DNA of 64,000 bases from positions 10,478,001 to 10,542,000 of the forward strand of contig OZ176054.1 of NCBI GenBank assembly GCA_964247055.1. Direction: 5' to 3'. The notes beneath the pieces are model-generated. The model saw only the letters and a list, made by a program, of their open reading frames with translations. It was not told where the DNA came from and did not search any database. The stretch is from Paragordius varius (lineage: Eukaryota; Animalia; Nematomorpha). This document shows, one piece after another, positions 1-62,627 of the stretch. Both the position numbers and the translations under genes were made by a program. Each line of letters opens with the position of its first letter. The stretch's first letter is position 1.

Positions 1-3000
1 TAGGGCGAAAAATCGATTTAAAAAATTATTTTTGTGGACTTTGTTTTTTTTGAAAAAAAATGGCATTTTACGGGGGGAGCGGGTAAAAAGAGGGCCTAAA
101 TCAAAAAAGTGACTCGACTATGTTCGGCGCAATCTAAAATAAGTAAACAAAAATCATATTTGAAATTGAATGGTCCAACACGTTCTCCAAAAAATTGACT
201 TAACCCATTTTTCACACAGGGTGGGCCCAAACTGGGGACCTAATTCCAAAAAAGGGCGAAGCTATTGTCGGGGCATTCATTAATGATTAAATTTTTTCGA
301 TGTTTGGATTTGATTGGGTTCACCGGTTTTCCGGAAACAGATCACAAAGTTATAAAAATCAGTTTTTAGCGGGTAGCTCCTTACCCGCCAGCTATCATCA
401 AATAAACGGTAGACTAAAATTTTTGCCTTTTAACAGGGAATACGTGGAATCCATATAGAATTTTTACGTTCTCATACCTAGGGCGAAAAATCGATTTAAA
501 AAATTATTTTTGTGGACTTTGTTTTTTTTGAGAAAGGTGGCATTTTACGGGGGGAGCGGGTAAAAAGAGGGCCTAAATCAAAAAAGTGACTCGACTATGT
601 TCGGCGCAATCTAAAAAAAGTAAACAAAAATCATATTTGAAATTGAATGGTCCAACACGTTCTCCAAAAAATTGACTTAACCCATTTTTCACACAGGGTG
701 GGCCCAAACTGGGGACCTAATTCCAAAAAAGGGCGAAGCTATTGTCGGGGCATTCATATTTTTTCGATATTTGGATTTGATTGGGTCTACCGGTTTTCCT
801 GTACCAGATCACAAAGCCAGCATCTTCCATTTTTATAAATATATAGATTACCATAAATAATGTATTAATATCCATATATCTTTTAACATGCTATACATAT
901 GATAGATACTCCTTACTCAGCATCTATCATCAAAGAAACGCTTGACTAAAATTTTTGCCTTTTAACAGGGAATACGTGGAATCCATATAGAATTTTTACG
1001 TTCTCATACCTAGGGCGAAAAATCGATTTAAAAAATTATTTTTGTGGACTTTGTTTTTTTTGAAAAAAAATGGCATTTTACGGGGGGAGCGGGTAAAAAG
1101 AGGGCCTAAATGAAAAAAGTGACTCGACTATGTTCGGCGCAATCTAAAATAAGTAAACAAAAATCATATTTGAAATTGAATGGTCCAACACGTTCTCCAA
1201 AAAATTGACTTAACCCATTTTTCACACAGGGTGGGCCCAAACTGGGGACCTAATTCCAAAAAAGGGCGAAGCTATTGTCGGGGCATTCATTAATGATTAA
1301 ATTTTTTCGATGTTTGGATTTGATTGGGTTCACCGGTTTTCCGGAAACAGATCACAAAGTTATAAAAATCAGTTTTTAGCGGGTAGCTCCTTACCCGCCA
1401 GCTATCATCAAATAAACGGTAGACTAAAATTTTTGCCTTTTAACAGGGAATACGTGGAATCCATATAGAATTTTTACGGTCTCATACCTAGGGCGAAAAA
1501 TCGATTTAAAAAATTATTTTTGTGGACTTTGTTTTTTGAAAAAAATGGCATTTTACGGGGGGAGCGGGTAAAAAGAGGGCCTAAATCAAAAAAGTGACTC
1601 GACTATGTTCGGCGCAATCTAAAAAAAGTAAACAAAAATCATATTTGAAATTGAATGGTCCAACACGTTCTCCAAAAAATTGACTTAACCCATTTTTCAC
1701 ACAGGGTGGGCCCAAACTGGGGACCTAATTCCAAAAAAGGGCGAAGCTATTGTCGGGGCATTCATATTTTTTCGATATTTGGATTTGATTGGGTCTACCG
1801 GTTTTCCTGTACCAGATCACAAAGCCAGCATCTTCCATTTTTATAAATATATAGATTACCATAAATAATGTATTAATATCCATATATCTTTTAACATGCT
1901 ATACATATGATAGATACTCCTTACTCAGCATCTATCATCAAAGAAACGCTTGACTAAAATTTTTGCCTTTTAACAGGGAATACGTGGAATCCATATAGAA
2001 TTTTTACGTTCTCATACCTAGGGCGAAAAATCGATTTAAAAAATTATTTTTGTGGACTTTGTTTTTTTTGAAAAAAAATGGCATTTTACGGGGGGAGCGG
2101 GTAAAAAGAGGGCCTAAATGAAAAAAGTGACTCGACTATGTTCGGCGCAATCTAAAATAAGTAAACAAAAATCATATTTGAAATTGAATGGTCCAACACG
2201 TTCTCCAAAAAATTGACTTAACCCATTTTTCACACAGGGTGGGCCCAAACTGGGGACCTAATTCCAAAAAAGGGCGAAGCTATTGTCGGGGCATTCATTA
2301 ATGATTAAATTTTTTCGATGTTTGGATTTGATTGGGTTCACCGGTTTTCCGGAAACAGATCACAAAGTTATAAAAATCAGTTTTTAGCGGGTAGCTCCTT
2401 ACCCGCCAGCTATCATCAAATAAACGGTAGACTAAAATTTTTGCCTTTTAACAGGGAATACGTGGAATCCATATAGAATTTTTACGGTCTCATACCTAGG
2501 GCGAAAAATCGATTTAAAAAATTATTTTTGTGGACTTTGTTTTTTGAAAAAAATGGCATTTTACGGGGGGAGCGGGTAAAAAGAGGGCCTAAATCAAAAA
2601 AGTGACTCGACTATGTTCGGCGCAATCTAAAATAAGTAAACAAAAATCATATTTGAAATTGAATGGTCCAACACGTTCTCCAAAAAATTGACTTAACCCA
2701 TTTTTCACACAGGGTGGGCCCAAACTGGGGACCTAATTCCAAAAAAGGGCGAAGCTATTGTCGGGGCATTCATATTTTTTCGATATTTGGATTTGATTGG
2801 GTCTACCGGTTTTCCTGTACCAGATCACAAAGCCAGCATTTTCCATTTTTATAAATATATAGATTACCATAAATAATGTATTAATATCCATATATCTTTT
2901 AACATGCTATACATATGATAGATACTCCTTACTCAGCATCTATCATCAAAGAAACGCTTGACTAAAATTTTTGCCTTTTAACAGGGAATACGTGGAATCC

Positions 3001-5517
3001 ATATAGAATTTTTACGTTCTCATACCTAGGGCGAAAAATCGATTTAAAAAATTATTTTTGTGGACTTTGTTTTTTTTGAAAAAAATGGCATTTTACGGGG
3101 GGAGCGGGTAAAAAGAGGGCCTAAATCAAAAAAGTGACTCGACTATGTTCGGCGCAATCTAAAATAAGTAAACAAAAATCATATTTGAAATTGAATGGTC
3201 CAACACGTTCTCCAAAAAATTGACTTAACCCATTTTTCACACAGGGTGGGCCCAAACTGGGGACCTAATTCCAAAAAAGGGCGAAGCTATTGTCGGGGCA
3301 TTCATTAATGATTAAATTTTTTCGATGTTTGGATTTGATTGGGTTCACCGGTTTTCCGGAAACAGATCACAAAGTTATAAAAATCAGTTTTTAGCGGGTA
3401 GCTCCTTACCCGCCAGCTATCATCAAATAAACGGTAGACTAAAATTTTTGCCTTTTAACAGGGAATACGTGGAATCCATATAGAATTTTTACGGTCTCAT
3501 ACCTAGGGCGAAAAATCGATTTTAAAAATTTTTTTTGTGGACTTTGTTTTTTGAAAAAAATGGCATTTTACGGGGGGAGCGGGTAAAAAGAGGGCCTAAA
3601 TCAAAAAAGTGACTCGACTATGTTCGGCGCAATCTAAAATAAGTAAACAAAAATCATATTTGAAATTGAATGGTCCAACACGTTCTCCAAAAAATTGACT
3701 TAACCCATTTTTCACACAGGGTGGGCCCAAACTGGGGACCTAATTCCAAAAAAGGGCGAAGCTATTGTCGGGGCATTCATATTTTTTCGATATTTGGATT
3801 TGATTGGGTCTACCGGTTTTCCTGTACCAGATCACAAAGCCAGCATTTTCCATTTTTATAAATATATAGATTACCATAAATAATGTATTAATATCCATAT
3901 ATCTTTTAACATGCTAATATGATAGATACTCCTTACTCAGCATCTATCATCAAAGAAACGCTTGACTAAAATTTTTGCCTTTTAACAGGGAATACGTGGA
4001 ATCCATATAGAATTTTTACGTTCTCATACCTAGGGCGAAAAATCGATTTAAAAAATTATTTTTGTGGACTTTGTTTTTTTTGAAAAAAATGGCATTTTAC
4101 GGGGGGAGCGGGTAAAAAGAGGGCCTAAATCAAAAAAGTGACTCGACTATGTTCGGCGCAATCTAAAATAAGTAAACAAAAATCATATTTGAAATTGAAT
4201 GGTCCAACACGTTCTCCAAAAAATTGACTTAACCCATTTTTCACACAGGGTGGGCCCAAACTGGGGACCTAATTCCAAAAAAGGGCGAAGCTATTGTCGG
4301 GGCATTCATTAATGATTAAATTTTTTCGATGTTTGGATTTGATTGGGTTCACCGGTTTTCCGGAAACAGATCACAAAGTTATATGAAAAATCAGTTTTTA
4401 GCGGGTAGCTCCTTACCCGCCAGCTATCATCAAATAAACGGTAGACTAAAATTTTTGCCTTTTAACAGGGAATACGTGGAATCCATATAGAATTTTTACG
4501 GTCTCATACCTAGGGCGAAAAATCGATTTAAAAAATTATTTTTGTGGACTTTGTTTTTTGAAAAAAATGGCATTTTACGGGGGGAGCGGGTAAAAAGAAG
4601 GCCTAAATCAAAAAAGTGACTCGACTATGTTCGGCGCAATCTAAAATAAGTAAACAAAAATCATATTTGAAATTGAATGGTCCAACACGTTCTCCAAAAA
4701 ATTGACTTAACCCATTTTTCACACGGGGTGGGCCCAAACTGGGGACCTAATTCCAAAAAAGGGCGAAGCTATTGTCGGGGCATTCATTAATGATTAAATT
4801 TTTTCGATGTTTGGATTTGATTGGGTTCACCGGTTTTCCGGAAACAGATCACAAATTATATGAAAAATCAGTTTTTAGCGGGTAGCTCCTTACCCGCCAG
4901 CTATCATCAAATAAACGGTAGACTAAAATTTTTGCCTTTTAACAGGGAATACGTGGAATCCATATAGAATTTTTACGGTCTCATACCTAGGGCGAAAAAT
5001 CGATTTAAAAAATTATTTTTGTGGACTTTGTTTTTTGAGAAAGGTGGCATTTTACGGGGGGAGCGGTTAAAAAGAGGGCCTAAATCAAAAAAGTGACTCG
5101 ACTATGTTCGGCGCAATCTAAAAAAAGTAAACAAAAATCATATTTGAAATTGAATGGTCCAACACGTTCTCCAAAAAATTGACTTAACCCATTTTTCACA
5201 CAGGGTGGGCCCAAACTGGGGACCTAATTCCAAAAAAGGGCGAAGCTATTGTCGGGGCATTCATATTTTTTCGATATTTGGATTTGATTGGGTCTACCGG
5301 TTTTCCTGTACCAGATCACAAAGCCAGCATTTTCCATTTTTATAAATATATAGATTACCATAAATAATGTATTAATATCCATATATCTTTTAACATGCTA
5401 TACATATGATAGATACTCCTTACCCGCCAGCTATCATCAAATAAACGGTAGACTAAAATTTTTGCCTTTTAACAGGGAATACGTGGAATCCATATAGAAT
5501 TTTTACGGTCTCATACC
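1..5517. repeat. A/B dimeric higher-order repeat domain (~1008 bp period) ending in a B/A hybrid monomer
   Basis: 478-bp A units (1, 1011, 2019, 3027) alternate with ~527-532-bp B units (479, 1489, 2497, 3504). B carries CCAGCAT(C/T)TTCCATTTTTATAAATATATAGATTACC...GATAGATAC and lacks 11 bp after CATTCAT. The unit at 4988-5517 is B-like up to CTCCTTAC and A-like after it. Confidence 0.93.
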
Positions 5518-8500
5518 TAGGGCGAAAAATCGATTTAAAAAATTATTTTTGTGGACTTTGTTTTTTGAAAAAAATGGCATTTTACGGGGGGAGCGGGTAA
5601 AAAGAGGGCCTAAATCAAAAAAGTGACTCGACTATGTTCGGCGCAATCTAAAATAAGTAAACAAAAATCATATTTGAAATTGAATGGTCCAACACGTTCT
5701 CCAAAAAATTGACTTAACCCATTTTTCACACGGGGTGGGCCCAAACTGGGGACCTAATTCCAAAAAAGGGCGAAGCTATTGTCGGGGCATTCATTAATGA
5801 TTAAATTTTTTCGATGTTTGGATTTGATTGGGTTCACCGGTTTTCCGGAAACAGATCACAAAGTTATATGAAAAATCAGTTTTTAGCGGGTAGCTCCTTA
5901 CCCGCCAGCTATCATCAAATAAACGGTAGACTAAAATTTTTGCCTTTTAACAGGGAATACGTGGAATCCATATAGAATTTTTACGGTCTCATACCTAGGG
6001 CGAAAAATCGATTTAAAAAATTATTTTTGTGGACTTTGTTTTTTGAAAAAAATGGCATTTTACGGGGGAGCGGGTAAAAAGAGGGCCTAAATCAAAAAAG
6101 TGACTCGACTATGTTCGGCGCAATCTAAAATAAGTAAACAAAAATCATATTTGAAATTGAATGGTCCAACACGTTCTCCAAAAAATTGACTTAACCCATT
6201 TTTCACACGGGGTGGGCCCAAACTGGGGACCTAATTCCAAAAAAGGGCGAAGCTATTGTCGGGGCATTCATTAATGATTAAATTTTTTCGATGTTTGGAT
6301 TTGATTGGGTTCACCGGTTTTCCGGAAACAGATCACAAATTATATGAAAAATCAGTTTTTAGCGGGTAGCTCCTTACCCGCCAGCTATCATCAAATAAAC
6401 GGTAGACTAAAATTTTTGCCTTTTAACAGGGAATACGTGGAATCCATATAGAATTTTTACGGTCTCATACCTAGGGCGAAAAATCGATTTAAAAAATTAT
6501 TTTTGTGGACTTTGTTTTTTGAAAAAAATGGCATTTTACGGGGGGAGCGGGTAAAAAGAGGGCCTAAATCAAAAAAGTGACTCGACTATGTTCGGCGCAA
6601 TCTAAAATAAGTAAACAAAAATCATATTTGAAATTGAATGGTCCAACACGTTCTCCAAAAAATTGACTTAACCCATTTTTCACACAGGGTGGGCCCAAAC
6701 TGGGGACCTAATTCCAAAAAAGGGCGAAGCTATTGTCGGGGCATTCATTAATGATTAAATTTTTTCGATGTTTGGATTTGATTGGGTTCACCGGTTTTCC
6801 GGAAACAGATCACAAAGTTATATGAAAAATCAGTTTTTAGCGGGTAGCTCCTTACCCGCCAGCTATCATCAAATAAACGGTAGACTAAAATTTTTGCCTT
6901 TTAACAGGGAATACGTGGAATCCATATAGAATTTTTACGGTCTCATACCTAGGGCGAAAAATCGATTTAAAAAATTATTTTTGTGGACTTTGTTTTTTGA
7001 AAAAAATGGCATTTTACTGGGGGAGCGGGTAAAAAGAGGGCCTAAATCAAAAAAGTGACTCGACTATGTTCGGCGCAATCTAAAATAAGTAAACAAAAAT
7101 CATATTTGAAATTGAATGGTCCAACACGTTCTCCAAAAAATTGACTTAACCCATTTTTCACACGGGGTGGGCCCAAACTGGGGACCTAATTCCAAAAAAG
7201 GGCGAAGCTATTGTCGGGGCATTCAGTAATGATTAAATTTTTTCGATGTTTGGATTTGATTGGGTTCACCGGTTTTCCGGAAACAGATCACAAAGTTGTA
7301 TGAAAAATCAGTTTTTAGCGGGTAGCTCCTTACCCGCCAGCTATCATCAAATAAACGGTAGACTAAAATTTTTGCCTTTTAACAGGGAATACGTGGAATC
7401 CATATAGAATTTTTACGGTCTCATACCTAGGGCGAAAAATCGATTTAAAAAATTATTTTTGTGGACTTTGTTTTTTGAAAAAAATGGCATTTTACGGGGG
7501 GAGCGGGTAAAAAGAGGACCTAAATCAAAAAAGTGACTCGACTATGTTCGGCGCAATCTAAAATAAGTAAACAAAAATCATATTTGAAATTGAATGGTCC
7601 AACACGTTCTCCAAAAAATTGACTTAACCCATTTTTCACACGGGGTGGGCCCAAACTGGGGACCTAATTCCAAAAAAGGGCGAAGCTATTGTCGGGGCAT
7701 TCATTAATGATTAAATTTTTTCGATGTTTGGATTTGATTGGGTTCACCGGTTTTCCGGAAACAGATCACAAATTATATGAAAAATCAGTTTTTAGCGGGT
7801 AGCTCCTTACCCGCCAGCTATCATCAAATAAACGGTAGACTAAAATTTTTGCCTTTTAACAGGGAATACGTGGAATCCATATAGAATTTTTACGGTCTCA
7901 TACCTAGGGCGAAAAATCGATTTAAAAAATTATTTTTGTGGACTTTGTTTTTTGAAAAAAATGGCATTTTACGGGGGGAGCGGGTAAAAAGAGGACCTAA
8001 ATCAAAAAAGTGACTCGACTATGTTCGGCGCAATCTAAAATAAGTAAACAAAAATCATATTTGAAATTGAATGGTCCAACACGTTCTCCAAAAAATTGAC
8101 TTAACCCATTTTTCACACGGGGTGGGCCCAAACTGGGGACCTAATTCCAAAAAAGGGCGAAGCTATTGTCGGGGCATTCATTAATGATTAAATTTTTTCG
8201 ATGTTTGGATTTGATTGGGTTCACCGGTTTTCCGGAAACAGATCACAAATTATATGAAAAATCAGTTTTTAGCGGGTAGCTCCTTACCCGCCAGCTATCA
8301 TCAAATAAACGGTAGACTAAAATTTTTGCCTTTTAACAGGGAATACGTGGAATCCATATAGAATTTTTACGGTCTCATACCTAGGGCGAAAAATCGATTT
8401 AAAAAATTATTTTTGTGGACTTTGTTTTTTTTGAAAAAAATGGCATTTTATGGGGGGAGCGGGTAAAAAGAGGGCCTAAATCAAAAAAGTGACTCGACTA

Positions 8501-11500
8501 TGTTCGGCGCAATCTAAAATAAGTAAACAAAAATCATATTTGAAATTGAATGGGCCAACACGTTCTCCAAAAAATTGACTTAACCCATTTTTCACACAGG
8601 GTGGGCCCAAACTGGGGACCTAATTCCAAAAAAGGGCGAAGCTATTGTCGGGGCATTCATTAATGATTAAATTTTTTCGATGTTTGGATTTGATTGGGTT
8701 CACCGGTTTTCCGGAAACAGATCACAAAGTTTGAAAAATCAGTTTTTAGCGGGTAGCTCCTTACCCGCCAGCTATCATCAAATAAACGGTAGACTAAAAT
8801 TTTTGCCTTTTAACAGGGAATACGTGGAATCCATATAGAATTTTTACGGTCTCATACCTAGGGCGAAAAATCGATTTAAAAAATTATTTTTGTGGACTTT
8901 GTTTTTTGAAAAAAATGGCATTTTACGGGGGGAGCGGGTAAAAAGAGGACCTAAATCAAAAAAGTGACTCGACTATGTTCGGCGCAATCTAAAATAAGTA
9001 AACAAAAATCATATTTGAAATTGAATGGTCCAACACGTTCTCCAAAAAATTGACTTAACCCATTTTTCACACGGGGTGGGCCCAAACTGGGGACCTAATT
9101 CCAAAAAAGGGCGAAGCTATTGTCGGGGCATTCATTAATGATTAAATTTTTTCGATGTTTGGATTTGATTGGGTTCACCGGTTTTCCGGAAACAGATCAC
9201 AAATTATATGAAAAATCAGTTTTTAGCGGGTAGCTCCTTACCCGCCAGCTATCATCAAATAAACGGTAGACTAAAATTTTTGCCTTTTAACAGGGAATAC
9301 GTGGAATCCATATAGAATTTTTACGGTCTCATACCTAGGGCGAAAAATCGATTTAAAAAATTATTTTTGTGGACTTTGTTTTTTTTGAAAAAAATGGCAT
9401 TTTATGGGGGTAGCGGGTAAAAAGAGGGCCTAAATCAAAAAAGTGACTCGACTATGTTCGGCGCAATCTAAAATAAGTAAACAAAAATCATATTTGAAAT
9501 TGAATGGTCCAACACGTTCTCCAAAAAATTGACTTAACCCATTTTTCACACAGGGTGGGCCCAAACTGGGGACCTAATTCCAAAAAAGGGCGAAGCTATT
9601 GTCGGGGCATTCATTAATGATTAAATTTTTTCGATGTTTGGATTTGATTGGGTTCACCGGTTTTCCGGAAACAGATCACAAAGTTTGAAAAATCAGTTTT
9701 TAGCGGGTAGCTCCTTACCCGCCAGCTATCATCAAATAAACGGTAGACTAAAATTTTTGCCTTTTAACAGGGAATACGTGGAATCCATATAGAATTTTTA
9801 CGGTCTCATACCTAGGGCGAAAAATCGATTTAAAAAATTATTTTTGTGGACTTTGTTTTTTGAAAAAAATGGCATTTTACGGGGGGAGCGGGTAAAAAGA
9901 GGACCTAAATCAAAAAAGTGACTCGACTATGTTCGGCGCAATCTAAAATAAGTAAACAAAAATCATATTTGAAATTGAATGGTCCAACACGTTCTCCAAA
10001 AAATTGACTTAACCCATTTTTCACACGGGGTGGGCCCAAACTGGGGACCTAATTCCAAAAAAGGGCGAAGCTATTGTCGGGGCATTCATTAATGATTAAA
10101 TTTTTTCGATGTTTGGATTTGATTGGGTTCACCGGTTTTCCGGAAACAGATCACAAATTATATGAAAAATCAGTTTTTAGCGGGTAGCTCCTTACCCGCC
10201 AGCTATCATCAAATAAACGGTAGACTAAAATTTTTGCCTTTTAACAGGGAATACGTGGAATCCATATAGAATTTTTACGGTCTCATACCTAGGGCGAAAA
10301 ATCGATTTAAAAAATTATTTTTGTGGACTTTGTTTTTTGAAAAAAATGGCATTTTACGGGGGGAGCGGGTAAAAAGAGGACCTAAATCAAAAAAGTGACT
10401 CGACTATGTTCGGCGCAATCTAAAATAAGTAAACAAAAATCATATTTGAAATTGAATGGTCCAACACGTTCTCCAAAAAATTGACTTAACCCATTTTTCA
10501 CACGGGGTGGGCCCAAACTGGGCCCCTAATTCCAAAAAAGGGCGAAGCTATTGTCGGGGCATTCATTAATGATTAAATTTTTTCGATGTTTGGATTTGAT
10601 TGGGTTCACCGGTTTTCCGGAAACAGATCACAAATTATATGAAAAATCAGTTTTTAGCGGGTAGCTCCTTACCCGCCAGCTATCATCAAATAAACGGTAG
10701 ACTAAAATTTTTGCCTTTTAACAGGGAATACGTGGAATCCATATAGAATTTTTACGGTCTCATACCTAGGGCGAAAAATCGATTTAAAAAATTATTTTTG
10801 TGGACTTTGTTTTTTGAAAAAAATGGCATTTTACGGGGGGAGCGGGTAAAAAGAGGACCTAAATCAAAAAAGTGACTCGACTATGTTCGGCGCAATCTAA
10901 AATAAGTAAACAAAAATCATATTTGAAATTGAATGGTCCAACACGTTCTCCAAAAAATTGACTTAACCCATTTTTCACACGGGGTGGGCCCAAACTGGGG
11001 ACCTAATTCCAAAAAAGGGCGAAGCTATTGTCGGGGCATTCATTAATGATTAAATTTTTTCGATGTTTGGATTTGATTGGGTTCACCGGTTTTCCGGAAA
11101 CAGATCACAAATTATATGAAAAATCAGTTTTTAGCGGGTAGCTCCTTACCCGCCAGCTATCATCAAATAAACGGTAGACTAAAATTTTTGCCTTTTAACA
11201 GGGAATACGTGGAATCCATATAGAATTTTTACGGTCTCATACCTAGGGCGAAAAATCGATTTAAAAAATTATTTTTGTGGACTTTGTTTTTTTTGAAAAA
11301 AATGGCATTTTATGGGGGGAGCGGGTAAAAAGAGGGCCTAAATCAAAAAAGTGACTCGACTATGTTCGGCGCAATCTAAAATAAGTAAACAAAAATCATA
11401 TTTGAAATTGAATGGGCCAACACGTTCTCCAAAAAATTGACTTAACCCATTTTTCACACAGGGTGGGCCCAAACTGGGGACCTAATTCCAAAAAAGGGCG

Positions 11501-44500: not shown

Positions 44501-47500
44501 TCCGGAAACAGATCACAAATTATATGAAAAATCAGTTTTTAGCGGGTAGCTCCTTACCCGCCAGCTATCATCAAATAAACGGTAGACTAAAATTTTTGCC
44601 TTTTAACAGGGAATACGTGGAATCCATATAGAATTTTTACGGTCTCATACCTAGGGCGAAAAATCGATTTAAAAAATTATTTTTGTGGACTTTGTTTTTT
44701 GAGAAAGGTGGCATTTTACGGGGGGAGCGGGTAAAAAGAGGGCCTAAATCAAAAAAGTGACTCGACTATGTTCGGCGCAATCTAAAATAAGTAAACAAAA
44801 ATCATATTTGAAATTGAATGGTCCAACACGTTCTCCAAAAAATTGACTTAACCCATTTTTCACACAGGGTGGGCCCAAACTGGGGATCTAATTCCAAAAA
44901 AGGGCGAAGCTATTGTCGGGGCATTCATTAATGATTAAATTTTTTCGATGTTTGGATTTGATTGGGTTCACCGGTTTTCCGGAAACAGATCACAAAGTTA
45001 TATGAAAAATCAGTTTTTAGCGGGTAGCTCCTTACCCGCCAGCTATCATCAAATAAACGGTAGACTAAAATTTTTGCCTTTTAACAGGGAATACGTGGAA
45101 TCCATATAGAATTTTTACGGTCTCATACCTAGGGCGAAAAATCAATTTAAAAAATTATTTTTGTGGACTTTGTTTTTTGAAAAAATGGCATTTTACGGGG
45201 GGAGCGGGTAAAAAGAGGGCCTAAATCAAAAAAGTGACTCGACTATGTTCGGCGCAATCTAAAATAAGTAAACAAAAATCATATTTGAAATTGAATGGTC
45301 CAACACGTTCTCCAAAAAATTGACTTAACCCATTTTTCACACAGGGTGGGCCCAAACTGGGGACCTAATTCCAAAAAAGGGCGAAGCTATTGTCGGGGCA
45401 TTCATTAATGATTAAATTTTTTCGATGTTTGGATTTGATTGGGTTCACCGGTTTTCCGGAAACAGATCACAAAGTTATATGAAAAATCAGTTTATAGCGG
45501 GTAGCTCCTTACCCGCCAGCTATCATCAAATAAACGGTAGACTAAAATTTTTGCCTTTTAACAGGGAATACGTGGAATCCATATAGAATTTTTACGGTCT
45601 CATACCTAGGGCGAAAAATCGATTTAAAAAATTATTCTTGTGGACTTTGTTTTTTGAGAAAGGTGGCATTTTACGGGGGGAGCGGGTAAAAAGAGGGCCT
45701 AAATCAAAAAAGTGACTCGACTATGTTCGGCGCAATCTAAAATAAGTAAACAAAAATCATATTTGAAATTGAATGGTCCAACACGTTCTCCAAAAAATTG
45801 ACTTAACCCATTTTTCACACAGGGTGGGCCCAAACTGGGGACCTAATTCCAAAAAAGGGCGAAGCTATTGTCGGGGCATTCATTAATGATTAAATTTTTT
45901 CGATGTTTGGATTTGATTGGGTTCACCGGTTTTCCGGAAACAGATCACAAAGTTATATGAAAAATCAGTTTTTAGCGGGTAGCTCCTTACCCGCCAGCTA
46001 TCATCAAATAAACGGTAGACTAAAATTTTTGCCTTTTAACAGGGAATACGTGGAATCCATATAGAATTTTTACGGTCTCATACCTAGGGCGAAAAATCGA
46101 TTTAAAAAATTATTTTTGTGGACTTTGTTTTTTGAAAAAAATGGCATTTTACGGGGGGAGCGGGTAAAAAGAGGGCCTAAATCAAAAATGTGACTCGACT
46201 CTGTTCGGCGCAATCTAAAATAAGTAAACAAAAATCATATTTGAAATTGAATGGTCCAACACGTTCTCCAAAAAATTGACTTAACCCATTTTTCACACAG
46301 GGTGGGCCCAAACTGGGGACCTAATTCCAAAAAAGGGCGAAGCTATTGTCGGGGCATTCATTAATGATTAAATTTTTTCGATGTTTGGATTTGATTGGGT
46401 TCACCGGTTTTCCGGAAACAGATCACAAAGTTATATGAAAAATCAGTTTTTAGCGGGTAGCTCCTTACCCGCCAGCTATCATCAAATAAACGGTAGACTA
46501 AAATTTTTGCCTTTTAACAGGGAATACGTGGAATCCATATAGAATTTTTACGGTCTCATACCTAGGGCGAAAAATCGATTTAAAAAATTATTTTTGTGGA
46601 CTTTGTTTTTTGAAAAAAATGGCATTTTACGGGGGGAGCGGGTAAAAAGAGGGCCTAAATCAAAAATGTGACTCGACTATGTTCGGCGCAATCTAAAATA
46701 AGTAAACAAAAATCATATTTGAAATTGAATGGTCCAACACGTTCTCCAAAAAATTGACTTAACCCATTTTTCACACGGGGTGGGCCCAAACTGGGGACCT
46801 AATTCCAAAAAAGGGCGAAGCTATTGTCGGGGCATTCATTACTGATTAAATTTTTTCGATGTTTGGATTTGATTGGGTTCACCGGTTTTCCGGAAACAGA
46901 TCACAAAGTTATATGAAAAATCAGTTTTTAGCGCATAGCTCCTTACCCGCCAGCTATCATCAAATAAACGGTAGACTAAAATTTTTGCCTTTTAACAGGG
47001 AATACGTGAAATCCATATAGAATTTTTACGGTCTCATACCTAGGGCGAAAAATCGATTTAAAAAATTATTTTTGTGGACTTTGTTTTTTGAAAAAAATGG
47101 CATTTTACGGGGGGAGCGGGTAAAAAGAGGACCTAAATCAAAAAAGTGATTCGACTATGTTCGGCGCAATCTAAAATAAGTAAACAAAAATCATATTTGA
47201 AATTGAATGGTCCAACACGTTCTCCAAAAAATTGACTTAACCCATTTTTCACACGGGGTGGGCCCAAACTGGGGACCTAATTCCAAAAAAGGGCGAAGCT
47301 ATTGTCGGGGCATTCATTAATGATTAAATTTTTTCGATGTTTGGATTTGATTGGGTTCACCGGTTTTCCGGAAACAGATCACAAAGTTATATGAAAAATC
47401 AGTTTATAGCGGGTAGCTCCTTACCCGCCAGCTATCATCAAATAAACGGTAGACTAAAATTTTTGCCTTTTAACAGGGAATACGTGGAATCCATATAGAA

Positions 47501-50500
47501 TTTTTACGGTCTCATACCTAGGGCGAAAAATCGATTTAAAAAATTATTTTTGTGGACTTTGTTTTTTGAGAAAGGTGGCATTTTACGGGGGGAGCGGGTA
47601 AAAAGAGGGCCTAAATCAAAAAAGTGACTCGACTATGTTCGGCGCAATCTAAAATAAGTAAACAAAAATCATATTTGAAATTGAATGGTCCAACACGTTC
47701 TCCAAAAAATTGACTTAACCCATTTTTCACACAGGGTGGGCCCAAACTGGGGACCTAATTCCAAAAAAGGGCGAAGCTATTGTCGGGGCATTCATTAATG
47801 ATTAAATTTTTTCGATGTTTGGATTTGATTGGGTTCACCGGTTTTCCGGAAACAGATCACAAAGTTATATGAAAAATCAGTTTTTAGCGGGTAGCTCCTT
47901 ACCCGCCAGCTATCATCAAATAAACGGTAGACTAAAATTTTTGCCTTTTAACAGGGAATACGTGGAATCCATATAGAATTTTTACGGTCTCATACCTAGG
48001 GCGAAAAATCGATTTAAAAAATTATTTTTGTGGACTTTGTTTTTTGAAAAAAATGGCATTTTACGGGGGGAGCGGGTAAAAAGAGGACCTAAATCAAAAA
48101 AGTGACTCGACTATGTTCGGCGCAATCTAAAATAAGTAAACAAAAATCATATTTGAAATTGAATGGTCCAACACGTTCTCCAAAAAATTGACTTAACCCA
48201 TTTTTCACACGGGGTGGGCCCAAACTGGGGACCTAATTCCAAAAAAGGGCGAAGCTATTGTCGGGGCATTCATTAATGATTAAATTTTTTCGATGTTTGG
48301 ATTTGATTGGGTTCACCGGTTTTCCGGAAACAGATCACAAAGTTATATGAAAAATCAGTTTATAGCGGGTAGCTCCTTACCCGCCAGCTATCATCAAATA
48401 AACGGTAGACTAAAATTTTTGCCTTTTAACAGGGAATACGTGGAATCCATATAGAATTTTTACGGTCTCATACCTAGGGCGAAAAATCGATTTAAAAAAT
48501 TATTTTTGTGGACTTTGTTTTTTGAGAAAGGTGGCATTTTACGGGGGGAGCGGGTAAAAAGAGGGCCTAAATCAAAAAAGTGACTCGACTATGTTCGGCG
48601 CAATCTAAAATAAGTAAACAAAAATCATATTTGAAATTGAATGGTCCAACACGTTCTCCAAAAAATTGACTTAACCCATTTTTCACACAGGGTGGGCCCA
48701 AACTGGGGACCTAATTCCAAAAAAGGGCGAAGCTATTGTCGGGGCATTCATTAATGATTAAATTTTTTCGATGTTTGGATTTGATTGGGTTCACCGGTTT
48801 TCCGGAAACAGATCACAAAGTTATATGAAAAATCAGTTTTTAGCGGGTAGATCCTTACCCGCCAGCTATCATCAAATAAACGGTAGACTAAAATTTTTGC
48901 CTTTTAACAGGGAATACGTGGAATCCATATAGAATTTTTACGGTCTCATACCTAGGGCGAAAAATCGATTTAAAAAATTATTTTTGTGGACTTTGTTTTT
49001 TGAAAAAAATGGCATTTTACGGGGGGAGCGGGTAAAAAGAGGACCTAAATCAAAAAAGTGACTCGACTATGTTCGGCGCAATCTAAAATAAGTAAACAAA
49101 AATCATATTTGAAATTGAATGGTCCAACACGTTCTCCAAAAAATTGACTTAACCCATTTTTCACACGGGGTGGGCCCAAACTGGGGACCTAATTCCAAAA
49201 AAGGGCGAAGCTATTGTCGGGGCATTCATTAATGATTAAATTTTTTCGATGTTTGGATTTGATTGGGTTCACCGGTTTTCCGGAAACAGATCACAAAGTT
49301 ATATGAAAAATCAGTTTTTAGCGGGTAGCTCCTTATCCGCCAGCTATCATCAAATAAACGGTAGACTAAAATTTTTGCCTTTTAACAGGGAATACGTGGA
49401 ATCCATATAGAATTTTTACGGTCTCATACCTAGGGCGAAAAATCGATTTAAAAAATTATTTTTGTGGACTTTGTTTTTTGAAAAAAATGGCATTTTACGG
49501 GGGGAGCGGGTAAAAAGAGGACCTAAATCAAAAAAGTGACTCGACTATGTTCGGCGCAATCTAAAATAAGTAAACAAAAATCATATTTGAAATTGAATGG
49601 TCCAACACGTTCTCCAAAAAATTGACTTAACCCATTTTTCACACAGGGTGGGCCCAAACTGGGGACCTAATTCCAAAAAAGGGCGAAGCTATTGTCGGGG
49701 CATTCATTAATGATTAAATTTTTTCGATGTTTGGATTTGATTGGGTTCACCGGTTTTCCGGAAACAGATCACAAAGTTATATGAAAAATCAGTTTTTAGC
49801 GGGTAGCTCCTTATCCGCCAGCTATCATCAAATAAACGGTAGACTAAAATTTTTGCCTTTTAACAGGGAATACGTGGAATCCATATAGAATTTTTACGGT
49901 CTCATACCTAGGGCGAAAAATCGATTTAAAAAATTATTTTTGTGGACTTTGTTTTTTGAAAAAATGGCATTTTACGGGGGGAGCGGGTAAAAAGAGGGCC
50001 TAAATCAAAAAAGTGACTCGACTATGTTCGGCGCAATCTAAAATAAGTAAACAAAAATCATATTTGAAATTGAATGGTCCAACACGTTCTCCAAAAAATT
50101 GACTTAACCCATTTTTCACACGGGGTGGGCCCAAACTGGGGACCTAATTCCAAAAAAGGGCGAAGCTATTGTCGGGGCATTCATTAATGATTAAATTTTT
50201 TCGATGTTTGGATTTGATTGGGTTCACCGGTTTTCCGGAAACAGATCACAAAGTTATATGAAAAATCAGTTTTTAGCGGGTAGCTCCTTACCCGCCAGCT
50301 ATCATCAAATAAACGGTAGACTAAAATTTTTGCCTTTTAACAGGGAATACGTGAAATCCATATAGAATTTTTACGGTCTCATACCTAGGGCGAAAAATCG
50401 ATTTAAAAAATTATTTTTGTGGACTTTGTTTTTTGAAAAAAATGGCATTTTACGGGGGGAGCGGGTAAAAAGAGGGCCTAAATCAAAAATGTGACTCGAC

Positions 50501-52135
50501 TATGTTCGGCGCAATCTAAAATAAGTAAACAAAAATCATATTTGAAATTGAATGGTCCAACACGTTCTCCAAAAAATTGACTTAACCCATTTTTCACACG
50601 GGGTGGGCCCAAACTGGGGACCTAATTCCAAAAAAGGGCGAAGCTATTGTCGGGGCATTCATTAATGATTAAATTTTTTCGATGTTTGGATTTGATTGGG
50701 TTCACCGGTTTTCCGGAAACAGATCACAAAGTTATATGAAAAATCAGTTTTTAGCGGGTAGCTCCTTACCCGCCAGCTATCATCAAATAAACGGTAGACT
50801 AAAATTTTTGCCTTTTAACAGGGAATACGTGGAATCCATATAGAATTTTTACGGTCTCATACCTAGGGCGAAAAATCGATTTAAAAAATTATTTTTGTGG
50901 ACTTTGTTTTTTGAAAAAAATGGCATTTTACGGGGGGAGCGGGTAAAAAGAGGGCCTAAATCAAAAATGTGACTCGACTATGTTCGGCGCAATCTAAAAT
51001 AAGTAAACAAAAATCATATTTGAAATTGAATGGTCCAACACGTTCTCCAAAAAATTGACTTAACCCATTTTTCACACAGGGTGGGCCCAAACTGGGGACC
51101 TAATTCCAAAAAAGGGCGAAGCTATTGTCGGGGCATTCATTAATGATTAAATTTTTTCGATGTTTGGATTTGATTGGGTTCACCGGTTTTCCGGAAACAG
51201 ATCACAAAGTTATATGAAAAATCAGTTTTTAGCGGGTAGCTCCTTACCCGCCAGCTATCATCAAATAAACGGTAGACTAAAATTTTTGCCTTTTAACAGG
51301 GAATACGTGGAATCCATATAGAATTTTTACGGTCTCATACCTAGGGCGAAAAATCGATTTAAAAAATTATTTTTGTGGACTTTGTTTTTTGAAAAAAATG
51401 GCATTTTACGGGGGGAGCGGGTAAAAAGAGGGCCTAAATCAAAAATGTGACTCGACTATGTTCGGCGCAATCTAAAATAAGTAAACAAAAATCATATTTG
51501 AAATTGAATGGTCCAACACGTTCTCCAAATTGACTTAACCCATTTTTCACACGGGGTGGGCCCAAACTGGGGACCTAATTCCAAAAAAGGGCGAAGCTAT
51601 TGTCGGGGCATTCATTAATGATTAAATTTTTTCGATGTTTGGATTTGATTGGGTTCACCGGTTTTCCGGAAACAGATCACAAAGTTATATGAAAAATCAG
51701 TTTTTAGCGGGTAGCTCCTTACCCGCCAGCTATCATCAAATAAACGGTAGACTAAAATTTTTGCCTTTTAACAGGGAATACGTGGAATCCATATAGAATT
51801 TTTACGGTCTCATACCTAGGGCGAAAAATCGATTTAAAAAATTATTTTTGTGGACTTTGTTTTTTGAAAAAAATGGCATTTTACGGGGGGAGCGGGTAAA
51901 AAGAGGGCCTAAATCAAAAATGTGACTCGACTATGTTCGGCGCAATCTAAAATAAGTAAACAAAAATCATATTTGAAATTGAATGGTCCAACACGTTCTC
52001 CAAAAAATTGACTTAACCCATTTTTCACACAGGGTGGGCCCAAACTGGGGACCTAATTCCAAAAAAGGGCGAAGCTATTGTCGGGGCATTCATTAATGAT
52101 TAAATTTTTTCGATGTTTGGATTTGATTGGGTTCA
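1..52135. repeat. Tandem satellite DNA array, ~108 head-to-tail monomers (mostly ~477-480 bp type A); runs off the left edge of the window
   Basis: The unit TAGGGCGAAAAATCGATTT...GAATTTTTACG(G/T)TCTCATACC recurs continuously (starts at 1, 479, 1011, 1489 ... 5518, 5996, 6472, 6950, 7428, 7905 ... 51817). Copies differ only by a few SNPs and homopolymer lengths. The last unit breaks off after ...GATTGGGTTCA at 52135. Monomer count is estimated from spacing. Confidence 0.98.
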
Positions 52136-52925
52136 TCTTGAAGTTAAAATGGGATCTATAAATTACGTAGCAAACAGCCGTCCTGAGATTTTTTCGCTCT
52201 TGAGAATCGATTATTTATATAAATCCTGGATAAAATTTTGATTTTTCTACTGAAAAAACTAAGCTTAAGTGAAAAAAAAACAAAAGTCGTATTTCGATAC
52301 ATTACTTTAATTTGATAATACTAAATAAGTCAAATGATTTGATGTCAGAATTTATTTATTTAGAAGTCAAATAATTGTGTCGTACCCATCAAGGTTAACA
52401 AGCCCCAAACTAATATACCATTACCATCGATTGTGTTCACAGATCATCGTGTTTTGTTGTATAAATGGTCTATTTATATTTATTTGAACATAAACAATTA
52501 TAAATATGATTTAACGCATACAGAAAATAGTCGATTGTTTTGTTTAAGTTATTTTTATGTGTTTTGATCCTACGGATATTCCCAAATACATTCACCATTA
52601 GTTAGATGGCCTGTTTTTAATTTTTTTATTTATTGAAATTTTAAAAAAACTAATTAAAAATTTTATAGTAAATAAATGTGATCAATTAAGGAATCAAGTG
52701 CGAATTGACTGGATTTTGTCTTTCAGTTAAACGAATAATACATAAATAAATTCGGATTAATAAACATAGAAGGTAATGTTTAAGTAAATTACGAAAACAT
52801 ACTTACATCCTTATGCTTATGTTTAATGCTAAATTTTTACAGTAAATATCCCGAAGAAAGTCCTATTTATAGATATGATTTAAAAATGTTGCAAAACAAT
52901 TATAAACATAAATATTATTTTATTC

Positions 52926-53071
52926 TCTCACACTCAAAGTTTGTTAGATTAATCGCATTCATAAAAATTCAAATTATATATAGTTTGCATTCTATAATTT
53001 AGTAAATCTCACACTCAAAGTTTGTTAGATTAATCGCATTCATAAAAATTCAAATTATATATAGTTTGCAT
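52926..53071. repeat. Identical 65-bp direct duplication separated by 16 bp
   Basis: TCTCACACTCAAAGTTTGTTAGATT...TATAGTTTGCAT occurs at 52926-52990 and 53007-53071. Confidence 0.95.
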
Positions 53072-54193
53072 GAATTTTGACTGCATTAACATTATTTTTT
53101 TCAAACACATTATAAACTTTAACCTGATAAATAAATAGTTTTATTTTTATTTTATTAAGCTTTAATTGAGCACATTTTATTTGACATGAATTAACGAGAA
53201 CAGCTTGCCCACACATGTATTTTCAAGGCAAAAAGTCCCATCCTGATCCCATAATACATTAATAAGATATATTGTTTCGTACATTCATGATATTCCTTAA
53301 ATTGTTGGAATTTAGAAGCGATATTACACCAATAATATTACGAGTAAACGGATTATGTAAAATGAAGATATAAAGTTAAGTATATTTTAGTAAAATAGCG
53401 AATTTATTAGCACAAATCAAAATGTACTATACTCCATTTTGACTTTAACTTTTAGTAGAGAATATAATATGGTTTGCCTATAAAATTTAACTGGCATCAT
53501 GCAATCATTTCGAAGCTAATGAAAAGTATTTATATTAATTTAAAACAATTGAATCCGAGATAGAATACATATTAGTTTATGAACAAAATCTCTAAGATTT
53601 ATGCTTAAAGACCTGCTAAGAAACCAAATAATTTTCGGATAAATCCTTATTATGTAATAATATATTTAAAAAGGGTAAAACATTGGCTTTTAAAACTTCT
53701 TCCAATAGTGGGCCCTCTCGATATTAACGATTTTTTTCATTTGTACATGCGATTTGGAAAAGTTATTTTATTAGTACTGTAACCACCCCCAAAAATTACC
53801 TTTTTTCGCAATAAAACTAAGTTTCCACAAATATTTGTTATAAACATGTGAAATAGGATAAATAATACTGATCCAAAGTATTTCCTTTATTATAGTCGAG
53901 CGTTTTTTTGAATAAACCCTGGATAGAATCTGTCCTTTAATAAACACCCCATTATCCTATAAAAAATCGTAGTAAATATCATTTTAAAACATGTGTAGCA
54001 ACAATTTAAATGGTAACTTTAGATTTCTTTTATAAATGCGCCGCTCATAGCCTGGTTGCTGTAATATGAACCTTATTGAAAAAACGTCATAGCGTGCTTT
54101 ACAGAGCACTAAATATATAAAATTTCTCATTGTTAAAGAATTTAATTACAAATTCAACAATGTTACCATGTTCTTTAACTTATATATATAATA

Positions 54194-54244
54194 CTAGCGT
54201 AAATCTCGTGCTGCTACGCAGCCCGAGGAAGTCCTTCGGACTTC
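54194..54244 (-). other. Helitron-type 3' terminus: two adjacent hairpins plus CTAG
   Basis: Hairpin 1 is at 54205-54227 (4+5 bp stem, one mismatch, 3-nt loop). Hairpin 2 is at 54228-54244, GAAGTCC-TTC-GGACTTC (perfect 7-bp stem). Confidence 0.8.
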
Positions 54245-54245
54245 T

Positions 54246-54265
54246 GGGGGGGGGGGGGGGGGGGG
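54246..54265 (+). repeat. G20 homopolymer inside the Helitron-like element
   Basis: 20 consecutive G next to the terminal hairpins. Confidence 0.9.
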
Positions 54266-54394
54266 AGGGCTATTTGAAAGGGACAATAAAATGATCCACA
54301 TATGTGGATTACTTTGAAACATTATTCAATAGATATGATTTTAGAGGAATTTTAAAACGGTGCATTCATACTAATATATTGTTTACTTGGAAGA

Positions 54395-55306
54395 AAAATT
54401 GTGGATTTTGTTTTTTGAAAAAAATGGCATTTTACAGGGGGAGCGGGTAAAAAGAGGGCCTAAATCAAAAAAGCGAGACGACTATGTTCGGCGCAATCAA
54501 ATGTAAGTAAACAAAAATCAGTTTTGAAATTGAATGATCCAACACGTTTCCCAGAAAATTGTCTCAAAGACACGATTTTTGGGGACTTCTGTTTACAAAA
54601 AAAACCGTTTTTCACACGTGGTGGGCCCGAACTGGGGGCCTATTTCAAAAAAGGGGCGAATCTATTGTCGGGGCATTCATTAATAATTATATTTTTTCGA
54701 AGTTTGAATTTGAATGGGTCTACCGGTTTTCTGGTACCAGATCACAAAGCCAGCATTTTCCATTTTTATAAATATATAGATTACCATAAATAATGTTTTA
54801 TTATCCATATATTTTTTAACATCCTATGCATTTGATAGATACTCCTTACTCAGCAGCTATCATCAAAGGAACGCTTGATTAAAATTTTTGCCTTTTGACA
54901 GGGAATACGAAAAATCCTTATTAAATTTTTACAATCTCATACCTTGGGCAAAAAATACAATCAAAAAATTATTTTTGTGGACTTTGTTTTTTTTGAAAAA
55001 AATGGCATTTTACGGGGGTAGCGGGTAAAAAGAGGGCCTAAATCAAAAAAGTGAGTCGACTATGTTCGGCGCGATCTAAGTAAACAAAAATCATATTTGA
55101 AATTGAATGGTCCAACACGTTCTCCGGAAAATTGTCTCAACCTGTTTTTTACACGGGGCCCGAACTGGAGGCCTATTTTAAAAAAAGGGCGAAGCTATTG
55201 TCGGGGTATTCATTAATTATATTTATTCGAAGTTTGAATTTATATGGGTCTACCGGTTTTCCGGTACCAGATCACAAAGCCAGCATTTTCCATTTTTATA
55301 AATATA
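54395..55306. repeat. About 1.7 diverged copies of the type B satellite unit forming the 5' part of the Helitron-like element
   Basis: Colinear, same-orientation homology to the array monomer (GTGGA..TTGTTTTTTGAAAAAAATGGCATTTTAC, GACTATGTTCGGCGC, CTATTGTCGGGG, CCAGATCACAAAGCCAGCATTTTCC) with many more substitutions and indels than array copies. Confidence 0.95.
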
Positions 55307-56334
55307 CACTAGTCGACAAATTTGGACATTTTTGATCCCACCAATCAGAATTTTGAAATATTATATATAGATTTTCGATTTTTCAAATACAAGAGAAAAT
55401 CGAGAGAAAATTAAAAATAACTTTATAATAAAATAATAATATATTATAAACTTAATATTATTTAATAAAGCGTTTTAAACTCTATCGTTTGAATATAAAT
55501 ATGTCATTTAAATATCAGAGAGAAAAAAATAGTACCGACTTAAACGTCAAAATTCCGTCTTTTTTTCAAGTTAATTTTAAACACCTATAAATATATATTA
55601 AAAAATATTAAAAGAGGCATTCTATGGTTTAAACCTTCGGCTTTCAAATAGGCTATATTTTTTTTGTTTTTTTTTGTTCTTTCGAGTATTTATTAGGCTT
55701 TTTCTTTTGAGTTGATTCTTACAAAAAATTCTTTATTTATACCTAGTGTACTTATTTTTCAAATTTATTGGTTGTTCTATTTGAATTTCAGATGGATGTT
55801 GTGTAGCCACTTTTAATAGAATTTAATGTTAGGGGATTGGACCATTTGTATTTACCTAATCTTTTTAATCGATTTAATTGTAGAATTTGTCAAACTTTAT
55901 TCTGTGAATTGGTTAATTTGACATGTCAATTTGCCTGGATTTTGCTTGCAAGTCTCTTTTATCGGGCTTTACGATTACTTATTGTTATCTTTGCCATATC
56001 TGGCATAATTATAGGATCGCTTGGGGGATATGTAGAGCTTGTGCAGCCGCCCGGATCTATCACACTATACATAAGCCCTTTTAGATTTTTAATACTTTGG
56101 CTCTTAGCTTGTTTAGTATCTTATTTAATGCCTAGAATTTTGTTATTCATGCAAATAAATATTTTGTACAAATTTTAGTGTTGATTATAGTCTATATCTT
56201 TGTATTACTTCCACAAAAAATTGTATAAATAGATATTAATATTATTCTCAATATATACATTTTCTTTTTAACTACAAATTTTAATATATTCAATAAAATG
56301 AATATTTATTTATTGTATATATTTAAAATAATAA

Positions 56335-56619
56335 TTATATGGCATTAAAATTCCAGATAAAATCAGATATCATGTTAATATTGTTTCGCGCGTTGTATCT
56401 TGCTTCAAATCTTTTTATATCCTGGTGCATTCGCTCGCCTATTTCATCGCTAATGTTATTGAACGGGAATTTTTCAATATGTTAATCTATTATGTGTAGC
56501 TTCATGGTCATTTTACAGCCTACATTTTATAAAATAATATGCCCATCCGATGATAACTTTCTACAAGCTCCTGAGCTAATATTTTATAATCCTCTTTATA
56601 AAAAGTTTTCCAGTATTAA
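56335..56619 (-). pseudogene. Relic of a Chapaev3-like transposase C-terminus, with a 23-nt intron
   Basis: Translation: ENFL / YKEDYKILAQELVESYHRMG^CKMTMKLHIID*HIEKFPFNNISDEIGERMHQDIKRFEARYNARNNINMISDFIWNFNAI*. This matches the remembered Chapaev3-type motif NFLG..MGCNMSLKIHFLHSHLDFFP..SDEHGERFHQDI..MEKRYQG..ADYCW, including the H(x4)H signature. There is an in-frame TAA at 56484-56482 and a frameshift near 56600. Confidence 0.8.
56520..56542 (-). other. Putative 23-nt GC-AG intron (phase 1) in the Chapaev-like relic
   Basis: GCATATTATTTTATAAAATGTAG interrupts the conserved MG-C motif (ATG G|GC TGT). Removing exactly 23 nt restores the frame. Confidence 0.7.
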
Positions 56620-58576
56620 CATCTATATTCCGCAAGTTATTTTTCTAAAATATATATTTACCACAACAGATGCAAAATTTATTTATATTATTTTTGCATT
56701 TTCGTACTAGAATTTTAATGGAAAATATTATGGCGACATCACCTGATGAAATTTTGGCTCTGGAGTATTAGTTGTATCGACATGCTCGTTTGAATATTTA
56801 AACATATGTACACGAGGAATGATTGTTATTTTTAAAATAAATACAAATTTAAAAATTTAATTTTGGAAAAATCCTATTGGTGGCCTTAAAATTTTTTTTG
56901 TTTTGACCTATCCATGCCATTAGGTATCAGAAAATGCAAAAAAATGGGGTGGTGCAAAACCTTGTTGAGCAGTGATATAGATTATCAGATCCTACGTAAT
57001 AAGGCCTTTTCAAGTTAAAATTTAAAAATACTTGACCACTTGATATTTAAATTATTTAGACAGTGACCGCCCCTCTCCATATTTACTTCGAGTGAGAAAA
57101 CAGCTCGTTCCCATTTCCTTTTTTTGTAAACATAAAATTTAACTTTTGTTTATTATAAAATATGTTTTTTACTCAATAATACGTTGGAATTATGCGCTCC
57201 ACTTAACAGTCTTAATAGGAATCTTAGTAAATGGGAGATCATAGGGAAATACCTAATTACATATTATATCTAACACTAATGTCATCATTATCCCAATAAA
57301 AAATATTCGATTTATTTATTTCATGGTGATACTTACCACCATATTTTGACAATTTTAATTTTTGACATTTATGATTTTGGTAGAGTCCCTTTCAAATTCC
57401 TAATATGGCATTCTGGTAAAAAATGCGAGAAAACAGTTTTAGTCTATGAGAGAAATGCTAATTTTTTAAGGTAAATTTAAATTATTCTTTAAGCTGATAG
57501 TTGTTTTATTCATAAACAAGAGAAAAACTTTGGAAGGCAAAACTTTATTTTAACAATAATATTACTGTAAAATTAAAAAATTATACGTTTATATTGTTTA
57601 ATGTCATGATAATTACTGTAATTTTGAATAACGCATCATTTTTTATCTTTATTTTAAAAGGAACAATAAAGCTCATCATATGTAAACACAATAAAAATAA
57701 GGAAAAACACACACATTTTATTATAAACAGAAAAACAAAAACAAAACCGACTTATAGTTTTTCATTCACTTTTTCATTTTGATAATTTTTGTTTTTGCAC
57801 ATTATTCGATATTTCTTTATTCCTTATTAATCTTTCCGCAAATCTATAATTATCTAAATCACACACAAAAATCAAATATTTAGTTTATTAAAAGTAATTT
57901 ATTTTTAATGGCTTTCCCCAAATTCTTGAAAGTTTAATTTTAAATAATATACACATCCTATATTATCGGCAGCGATTTTGCCAAGCAATCATTCAATTGG
58001 TGCTTTCAAAATTTGTGTCTGCCCAAAATTTTCTTTTAACAGAAAAAAAATCATAAACCCACAACAATTCTATATTCAATTATTCACGACTTTTCAGGTA
58101 TGCTTATTGTAAAATCTATATCTGAAACTATGTACTTATAATTACAAAGTAAATCCATTTTTTGGAAATGACGCACGTTTTTTTTCATATTACATGTAAT
58201 ACAATATGAGTAGGTGGAGAGGTTCCTTTCTTTTCTTTGTACATATATAAAAAATATTAATAAATTGTTTTTTCATAAATGTATTTATACAAAATTACTT
58301 AATGTTAACTGGTTGCACACATTTGCGTCATACAAAATATGTAATTACAAAATATCTAGGACTTATTACTAATTCCCTGGAATTAAAAATTTTGTCATTC
58401 TTAATTACATATATGTTTATTAACTGTATTCTTTAGTTTTGATCGGCAAAATTTATGTAGTTTGTTGCGTAAAATTAACTGAACAAATTTATGTTAAATT
58501 ATAGAAAAAAAGTTGTTAATGCAACAATCTGTTGTTTGGTTATCATACGCCATAGTAAAATAATACGTTTTAATTT

Positions 58577-58613: not shown

Positions 58614-60631
58614 GTTTTAAATTGGGTATTTATATGTATTAAAACTATTGTTAAGTAAGATATAAATAGTTTTCCCCCTTTTTACCTTTTTATTTTATGT
58701 TAAAACTAACTTTCTACGTACTATCTAATTTATCATTTTATACTAATTGATTTCTACCTTATATTCCAAATTTATTATTTAAAATTGATTAAAATTAATT
58801 ATTATAATGTTTAAATTTTAATTATATTTTTTTATATTACCTATTAACAAGGGTAGATGGACATTTCGATTCAAATTACACATATATGTAATATAAATAA
58901 ATTAGATATTTTTTTGAACCATTTGCGCGGAGGCGTTTTTTATCTCTACAGGCTAGGCTTCTTCTTTCTCTATTAGTACACAATTTCACAACTAATAATT
59001 TTTTTTGCGCTCTAAAAAATTAATTAATTTTGCACACAAATACTACTACACTATTGAGAATATTATCACTCTGCATTCATTATCTTTACAATTTTTTATT
59101 TGTTTAGATGCCTCCTTCGTTGTTCCTTTTCAATGTCTCTTATCAAATTAGAACTAAAAAAATTTTTAGTAGTAATTTATAATATAATTTTTACACCTGA
59201 TTAAATTTTTATTTCTAAAGAATCCTGCTACATATCTAAATCATCAACTAGAATATAAATTTTGCACATCTATCAGAACTCTGGACAAGCAAGTTTTCTT
59301 ATGCATATTTTTTTCTAAAATATTTCTTAAATCATTTACATAAATCATGCTAATAAAATTACAATTTTATAGAGATGAGATTCGTGACCCATTTTTGTTA
59401 AGCCGGAGATATAATGAAATTTTGACTTGTACACCGTTTTGATTTTGAGCTCTTTTGAAAGTATAATTTAGACTTTGTAGAGCCCATTGTATATGTATAA
59501 AAATATCTAACTATTTTATGATTCCGAAAGCCATAAAATATATTTTTTAAATTCTTCATTAGGTTTTTTAGGGTTATTTCTTTTTACAACTATTACTGTG
59601 GAAAACTTGCTTAATTTTACATACATCATAATTTTCAAAAAAAAAACATTTTTTTTCGATCCCACAATCTTTCATAACTGTATTTGCTGGCATATAAAAC
59701 ATTAACCATACAAATGTTATCATATTATAAAGCATATATCATTCATATTTTATTTGATATTTAAAGTCTGTGTACTGTTACTGTTCAATATATTTTCATA
59801 AACCACACATTTGTTTTATACAAATTTATTTAGCCACATATATATATATAGTATGTGCTTGGAAAAATATTTCATTTTTTATATACATAGTTAAAAAATC
59901 GGTTTTTCAAATTTTGAAAACACAGTTTAGTTTCTCAAACATTTCGTTACATTGGTTTCTGTTAAAATTTTTTTTTATATAATATTACTGTTTAGCTAAT
60001 TTTTACATTAGATTTTTGCATAGTTTGTGCGATGATTGATGATTTCACATTAAATATTATGCGTTTTGTACACACACTAAAGAGAAGTTTTACTGCTTAC
60101 TAAAGTTTTTAAATTGGTGAATACGAAATAAAATATGAAAAAAACTTATATAATTCTCCATTCACCAATTAATACACCCTTAAAACCAATATCAATCATA
60201 TTATGTTTAATAAAGTTTTTGAGGTTTTTCCCATATTTATGATTATAATGGCATTAATGACGCTCTGTTTTTTTATGGAACTTTAACTTTAACTTATCAA
60301 GCGAAATATTAAATCATTTTACAAATTACAAACGCATAAATATTAAATTAACTTTAACTTAAATATTTTGTTTTATTAAAAGCCATATAGATTATGAGAG
60401 CATACAATAAAACGAGACTTATTATTGGCTATTTCGATGATCTTTTAATTGAGTATAAGGGGGTTTAATTTGCATGTCTGGTGCCATGTATGAAATTTTT
60501 CCTTTATTTTTGAAAATTATGATATTAGTGTTCATGAAATATGAAAATAAAATCTTTTTCAATTTCCAGTGGTGTAAGGTAAGAATCGATAAACGATTGA
60601 AATTAACCCGTTTCCCCATAATTTAACATTA

Positions 60632-62599: not shown

Positions 62600-62627
62600 T
62601 TTATAAGTGGGATATTTTTGCAAAAAA

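Follow-up and report, generated by a model that had tools for sequence, protein, structure and literature searches.

How does a satellite array come to carry the 5' terminus of a transposon inside its repeat unit, and is the related element that lies beside the array its parent? Both questions are raised by the 64,000-nucleotide stretch of Paragordius varius DNA analysed here (the window), most of which is occupied by a tandem array that is followed, after a spacer of 2.06 kb without homology, by an element with Helitron-type ends, here called F. The route from Helitron to satellite is already known; the original prediction for this locus was that the array is an amplified Helitron 5' segment and that F is its seed.

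Table 1. Features of the locus, with positions counted in the window
Feature	Position	Strand	Remarks
Satellite array, about 109 units	1..52135	-	Extends leftward out of the window; cut off on the right within an A unit
Mixed zone	1..5853	-	Five TC-bearing B linkers interspersed with A units, arranged as BA dimers and one AAB
First B-type Helitron 5' terminus	827..847	-	
Pure A array	5854..52135	-	TC-less units of 472-481 bp; local higher-order blocks of 2, 3 and 4 monomers
AT-rich spacer	52136..54193	.	Without homology to unit or element
Helitron-type 3' tail of F	54194..54398	-	205 bp; poly-C run, two GC-rich hairpins, CTAG end (54197-54194), then T at 54193 (CTRR then T)
F2, inner unit of F	54399..54780	-	A|TC start at 54780; two ~180-bp sub-repeats, the ancestral 36-bp segment retained
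F1, outer B-type unit of F (core + linker)	54781..55306	-	36-bp deletion in common with the array
Chapaev3-like cut-and-paste insertion, 1668 bp	55307..56974	-	Inside the F1 terminus; CACT...AGTG ends, ATA duplication
Duplicated ATA and outer 5' TC of F	56975..56981	-	ATA at 56975-56977; TC with its T at 56981, after an A at 56982

Two kinds of unit in one array

Tandem Repeats Finder gives the array a period of 478 bp and traces it to 52135, and an anchor scan, in which 108 anchors were counted, follows it to position 1 (Table 1). Five units, 527-532 bp long and all lying within 340-5850, are of type B; all remaining units are of type A, with a mean A-A identity of 98.9%. Read on the minus strand, the B units contain A|TCTATATATTTATAAAAATGG (a start also given as A|TCTATATATTT...), with the T of the TC at 847, 1855, 2863, 3870, and 5354. 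This Helitron-type A|TC start is absent from the A units, which leaves about 95% of the units without it. At the end that faces F, the array begins about 57 bp into an A unit and has no TC terminus. The spacer beyond it contains an exact 65-bp direct duplication with a spacing of 81 bp (window 52926-53071).

The cores of A and B are near-identical, and the differences between them are confined to some 200 bp surrounding the terminus, a block in which 6 of 49 sites differ on one side and 9 of 40 on the other. Within this block approximately 33 bp stand in A where approximately 95 bp, including the TC, were; the private changes number 4 + 8 in A and 2 + 1 in B, and B has in addition a 10-bp deletion of its own. 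Searches for the source of the A-specific 33 bp gave just 8-13-base matches. The A-specific block (e.g., window 18270-18340) can form two small adjoining hairpins (z about -2), and at the matching position B forms a hairpin of another kind, 12 bp long (z about -3); these structures may have arisen incidentally when repair eliminated the TC.

The flank element and its interrupted terminus

A diverged homologue of the array unit was found by BLAST at 54399-55306 (80-86% identity) and consists of two tandem copies, F1 and F2. F holds about 1.7 units, not one, with two TC starts (56981 and 54780) and one 3' end. An A stands in front of the TC at 56981 (once the insertion described below is removed), at 54780, and in the B units. 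The prediction that the repeated monomer arose by amplification of a Helitron-type 5' segment is supported, and the hairpin-CTAG|T end at 54194 is confirmed: the double hairpin of the tail stops 11 nt short of CTAG|T, the fold of the tail DNA has a z of -5.2, a value matched by none of 200 shuffles, and of the 73 CTRR|T sites in the 11.9 kb outside the array, just one has a stronger hairpin. The sequences flanking F differ, there being no target duplication, and no pair of terminal inverted repeats was reported. The tail is linked to F2 by adjacency and orientation only; a profile search detected no sub-repeat homology in it, and the idea that tail or linker consists of additional sub-repeats was rejected on this negative result and a pairwise p of about 0.02. 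An Rfam search gave no match, and exact-pattern scans of metagenomes likewise yielded none.

The outer boundary of F is less direct. Homology to the array was said to stop within 3 nt of the TC at 56981, but as written this does not hold: continuous homology ends at 55306, and comparison of 55309-57300 with the array gave no significant similarity (best E 0.14). When the insertion at 55307-56974 is taken out, the terminal motif is exactly restored and homology runs 3 nt past the TC at 56981. To this extent the claim stands, and the unit boundary does coincide with the transposon terminus, a correspondence carried by the 10 bases that follow the insertion on its right.

The terminal repeats of the insertion, with CAC... 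ends, match imperfectly (10 of 14 positions identical), and ATA borders it on either side as a 3-bp duplication. A stop-free piece of 48 amino acids within it matched 93 homologues, all of them unnamed (best E 3e-8), among which no informative Pfam family was found, and tblastn places a transposase-like remnant at about 56344-56616 that covers the C-terminal part of the frame only. Its ends, size, and 3-bp duplication suggest an assignment to Chapaev3, whose members likewise have short terminal repeats starting with CAC and similar to those seen here, a 3-bp duplication, and a length of about 1.7 kb; the consensus target of that family is TWA, whereas here it is ATA, and the protein homologues have neither a name nor a Pfam family (PMC3014272). 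A Tc1-type insertion with a TA target was considered and rejected, since it needs an extra base where ATA fits exactly. The CTAG|T at 55309 likewise does not qualify as a further Helitron end; it belongs to the terminal repeat of the insertion and has no hairpin. The insertion struck the outer start of F after F had formed.

Descent and growth of the array

The repeated unit contains two sub-repeats of about 180 bp (score 94, against a shuffle maximum of 49). F2 has 36 bp that are missing from F1, A, and B, and this segment aligns with the neighbouring sub-repeat (1 of 1000 shuffles for the segment alone). Because F2's 36 bp align with the other sub-repeat, the loss is shared and derived, which points to an origin of the array from an F1-type truncated unit and makes the unit joined to the tail the older form. 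The deletion common to F1 and all array units supports the direction from Helitron to satellite.

The TC is present in F1, F2, and B alike, and by parsimony its loss in A, as originally proposed, is the favoured direction. The B/A dimers had been taken for the transition from B to A, a view that the data do not support in that form: since a derived 10-bp deletion and derived substitutions are peculiar to B, present-day B is the sister of A and not its ancestor, and the split between them is not recent. In the block around the terminus, just three sites unite A with B against F1 and F2, and no site conflicts.

We hold it to be rather probable that the satellite is the offspring of the 5' unit of a non-autonomous family of canonical Helitrons, which passed through a stage with many starts and one end before a TC-less A unit expanded by unequal exchange. 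The body of the source element would have been built of old sub-repeats of about 180 bp, and a truncated unit from its 5' end, about 530 bp long (TC, core, and linker), would have been repeated head to tail ahead of a complete copy, giving elements with many starts and one end. F would be an example with two starts, its outer terminus later struck by the Chapaev3-like transposon. We infer that these Helitrons were mobile here, and the first repeats were plausibly made by rolling-circle copying. In a sister lineage, one unit would have exchanged its approximately 95 bp, TC included, for approximately 33 bp to become type A; unable to start rolling-circle copying, type A would have come to span about 47 kb, expanded and kept uniform chiefly through unequal exchange and conversion. 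The older, less homogenised edge of the array would then be the B/A zone. The array's own 3' tail is predicted to lie to the left of the window.

Unequal exchange as the presumed driver of growth agrees with the arrangement of variants. Identical neighbouring monomers are found at 1 of 95 positions at lag 1, and 10-11 identical pairs occur at each of lags 2-4. Local multi-monomer blocks are what satellite theory expects under unequal exchange and conversion. The local 2-4-mer variant blocks, together with the B unit at 5314, which is an A/B recombinant, show this pattern. Rolling-circle copying alone is insufficient for the 47-kb A tract, because the 5' terminus, which A does not have, is required for Helitron transposition (PMC4778049). 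At alignment column 298 of the core, about 60% of the A units (5854-52135) carry a variant that neither F1 and F2 nor the B zone has, a distribution suggestive of a partial sweep.

The original prediction went further and made F the literal seed, from which the array grew locally through B and the B/A dimers to A. F and the array do lie on the same strand, 2 kb apart, and F1, besides sharing the 36-bp deletion, has a linker 93.5% identical to that of B and is the flank unit nearer to the array in the shared core (F1-A 92.4%, F2-A 89.4%, F1-F2 91.6%). Against this, the flank units are 8-11% from every monomer without a gradient, the distance to F1 being flat at 7.7-8.2% along the whole array; F1 and F2 have 10 core states in common against the array; and B carries its private derived changes. 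In addition, the B/A dimers occupy the end of the array remote from F, 47 kb away, and the end facing F is without a TC. As formulated, the claim is unsupported, and we consider descent from F itself unlikely; to judge from these sequences, F as a cousin of the array fits the observations as well as, or better than, F as its seed, and a parent next door is possible but unproven.

Less likely still is an origin in which the satellite came first, either because a Helitron captured satellite units or because F is a decayed orphan pair of monomers beside an unrelated Helitron tail. The ancient sub-repeat structure within the unit would suit such an origin, as would the lack of clear homology between tail and unit. 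It is opposed by the TC, which sits within the repeated unit and also marks the outer boundary, by the ancestral 36 bp kept by F2, and by the tree: the array monomers form one shallow clade, and F1 and F2, rather than being nested among array variants, fall outside it with support of 100/98 (one row per distinct core sequence, rough bootstrap), so that the nesting which would have spoken against the original prediction is absent.

That the whole array is a single rolling-circle concatemer, inserted in one event, we regard as very improbable. The mechanism has been put forward for plant arrays (summary in PMC12628747) and would account for the very high homogeneity, but the essential TC is missing from the A units, the variants lie in local blocks and one B unit is a recombinant, and the 5' end of the array has no terminus. 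Finally, it is hardly credible that no Helitron is involved and that AT-rich DNA has produced the termini by chance: words like TCTATATA are low in complexity and the boundary 10-mer recurs once by chance, at 60385, but the GC-rich double hairpin stands at the correct distance from CTAG|T, on the correct strand and 205 bp from the unit, and the register at the boundary is exact.

Comparison with known systems and a neighbouring element

Truncated Helitrons in tandem, with multiple 5' ends and a single 3' end, were described by Xiong, Dooner and Du (2016) and ascribed to rolling-circle copying of templates that lack a terminator (summary in PMC12628747), and Helitrons with multiple 5' termini are also found in Fusarium (PMC5148889). 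As in those arrays, F1, F2, and the five B units begin at a 5' TC, and F combines two starts with one hairpin-CTAG end. Unlike them, the array described here is 99% homogeneous, consists of TC-less units to about 95%, and belongs to an animal genome. F is bounded by its outer TC and its single 3' tail, whereas the large array has a 5' side without TC and a 3' side that lies beyond the window.

Helentron/DINE (HINE) elements are characterised by subterminal inverted repeats, a T|T-type target, and repeats confined to the centre. We considered F and the array as members of this group and rejected the assignment: the TC/CTAG ends are canonical and lie at A|T, the terminus is within the repeat, and no subterminal inverted pair was found. 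The group does resemble the present case in providing a rolling-circle source of satellites, in having sub-repeats of 150-180 bp in the body, and in occurring in element-bound and free-standing forms, as in DINE-TR1 of Drosophila and Cg_HINE of the oyster, but there it is the central repeats that have been amplified and turned into satellites (PMC7492417, PMC8268682). The closer match is Helraiser/Helibat1, which has 5'-TC and CTAG-3' ends, a hairpin 11 nt from the end, and an A|T target (PMC4778049). F agrees with it in all of these; it differs in having no RepHel coding sequence, no RepHel ORF being present within the 64-kb window, and its mobility is putative.

On the favoured descent from a Helitron 5' unit, we regard the locus as a clear animal example of the known route from Helitron to satellite, which reveals neither a new mechanism nor a host function, and in which the order of events is unusually readable from a polarised 36-bp deletion, the loss of the TC, and a later insertion in the terminus. 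Set against the full genome, it would allow seeding by rolling-circle copying to be told apart from growth by recombination. A bolder view would see here the very step from a mobile many-start Helitron to a fixed satellite, with a TC-less variant displacing the TC-bearing unit within one array, while the older units survive at its edge and the element that seeded it lies alongside; to this we assign a low probability.

A second DNA transposon, of the Tc1/IS630 type, lies nearby at window 60624-62848. It has inverted ends of about 220 bp that are 99.5% identical and a minus-strand ORF of 307 amino acids with the Pfam domain DDE_3, whose best protein matches are 30-37% identical; a 63-bp inverted repeat (83%) within the element, at 61125-61363, overlaps the 3' end of the ORF.
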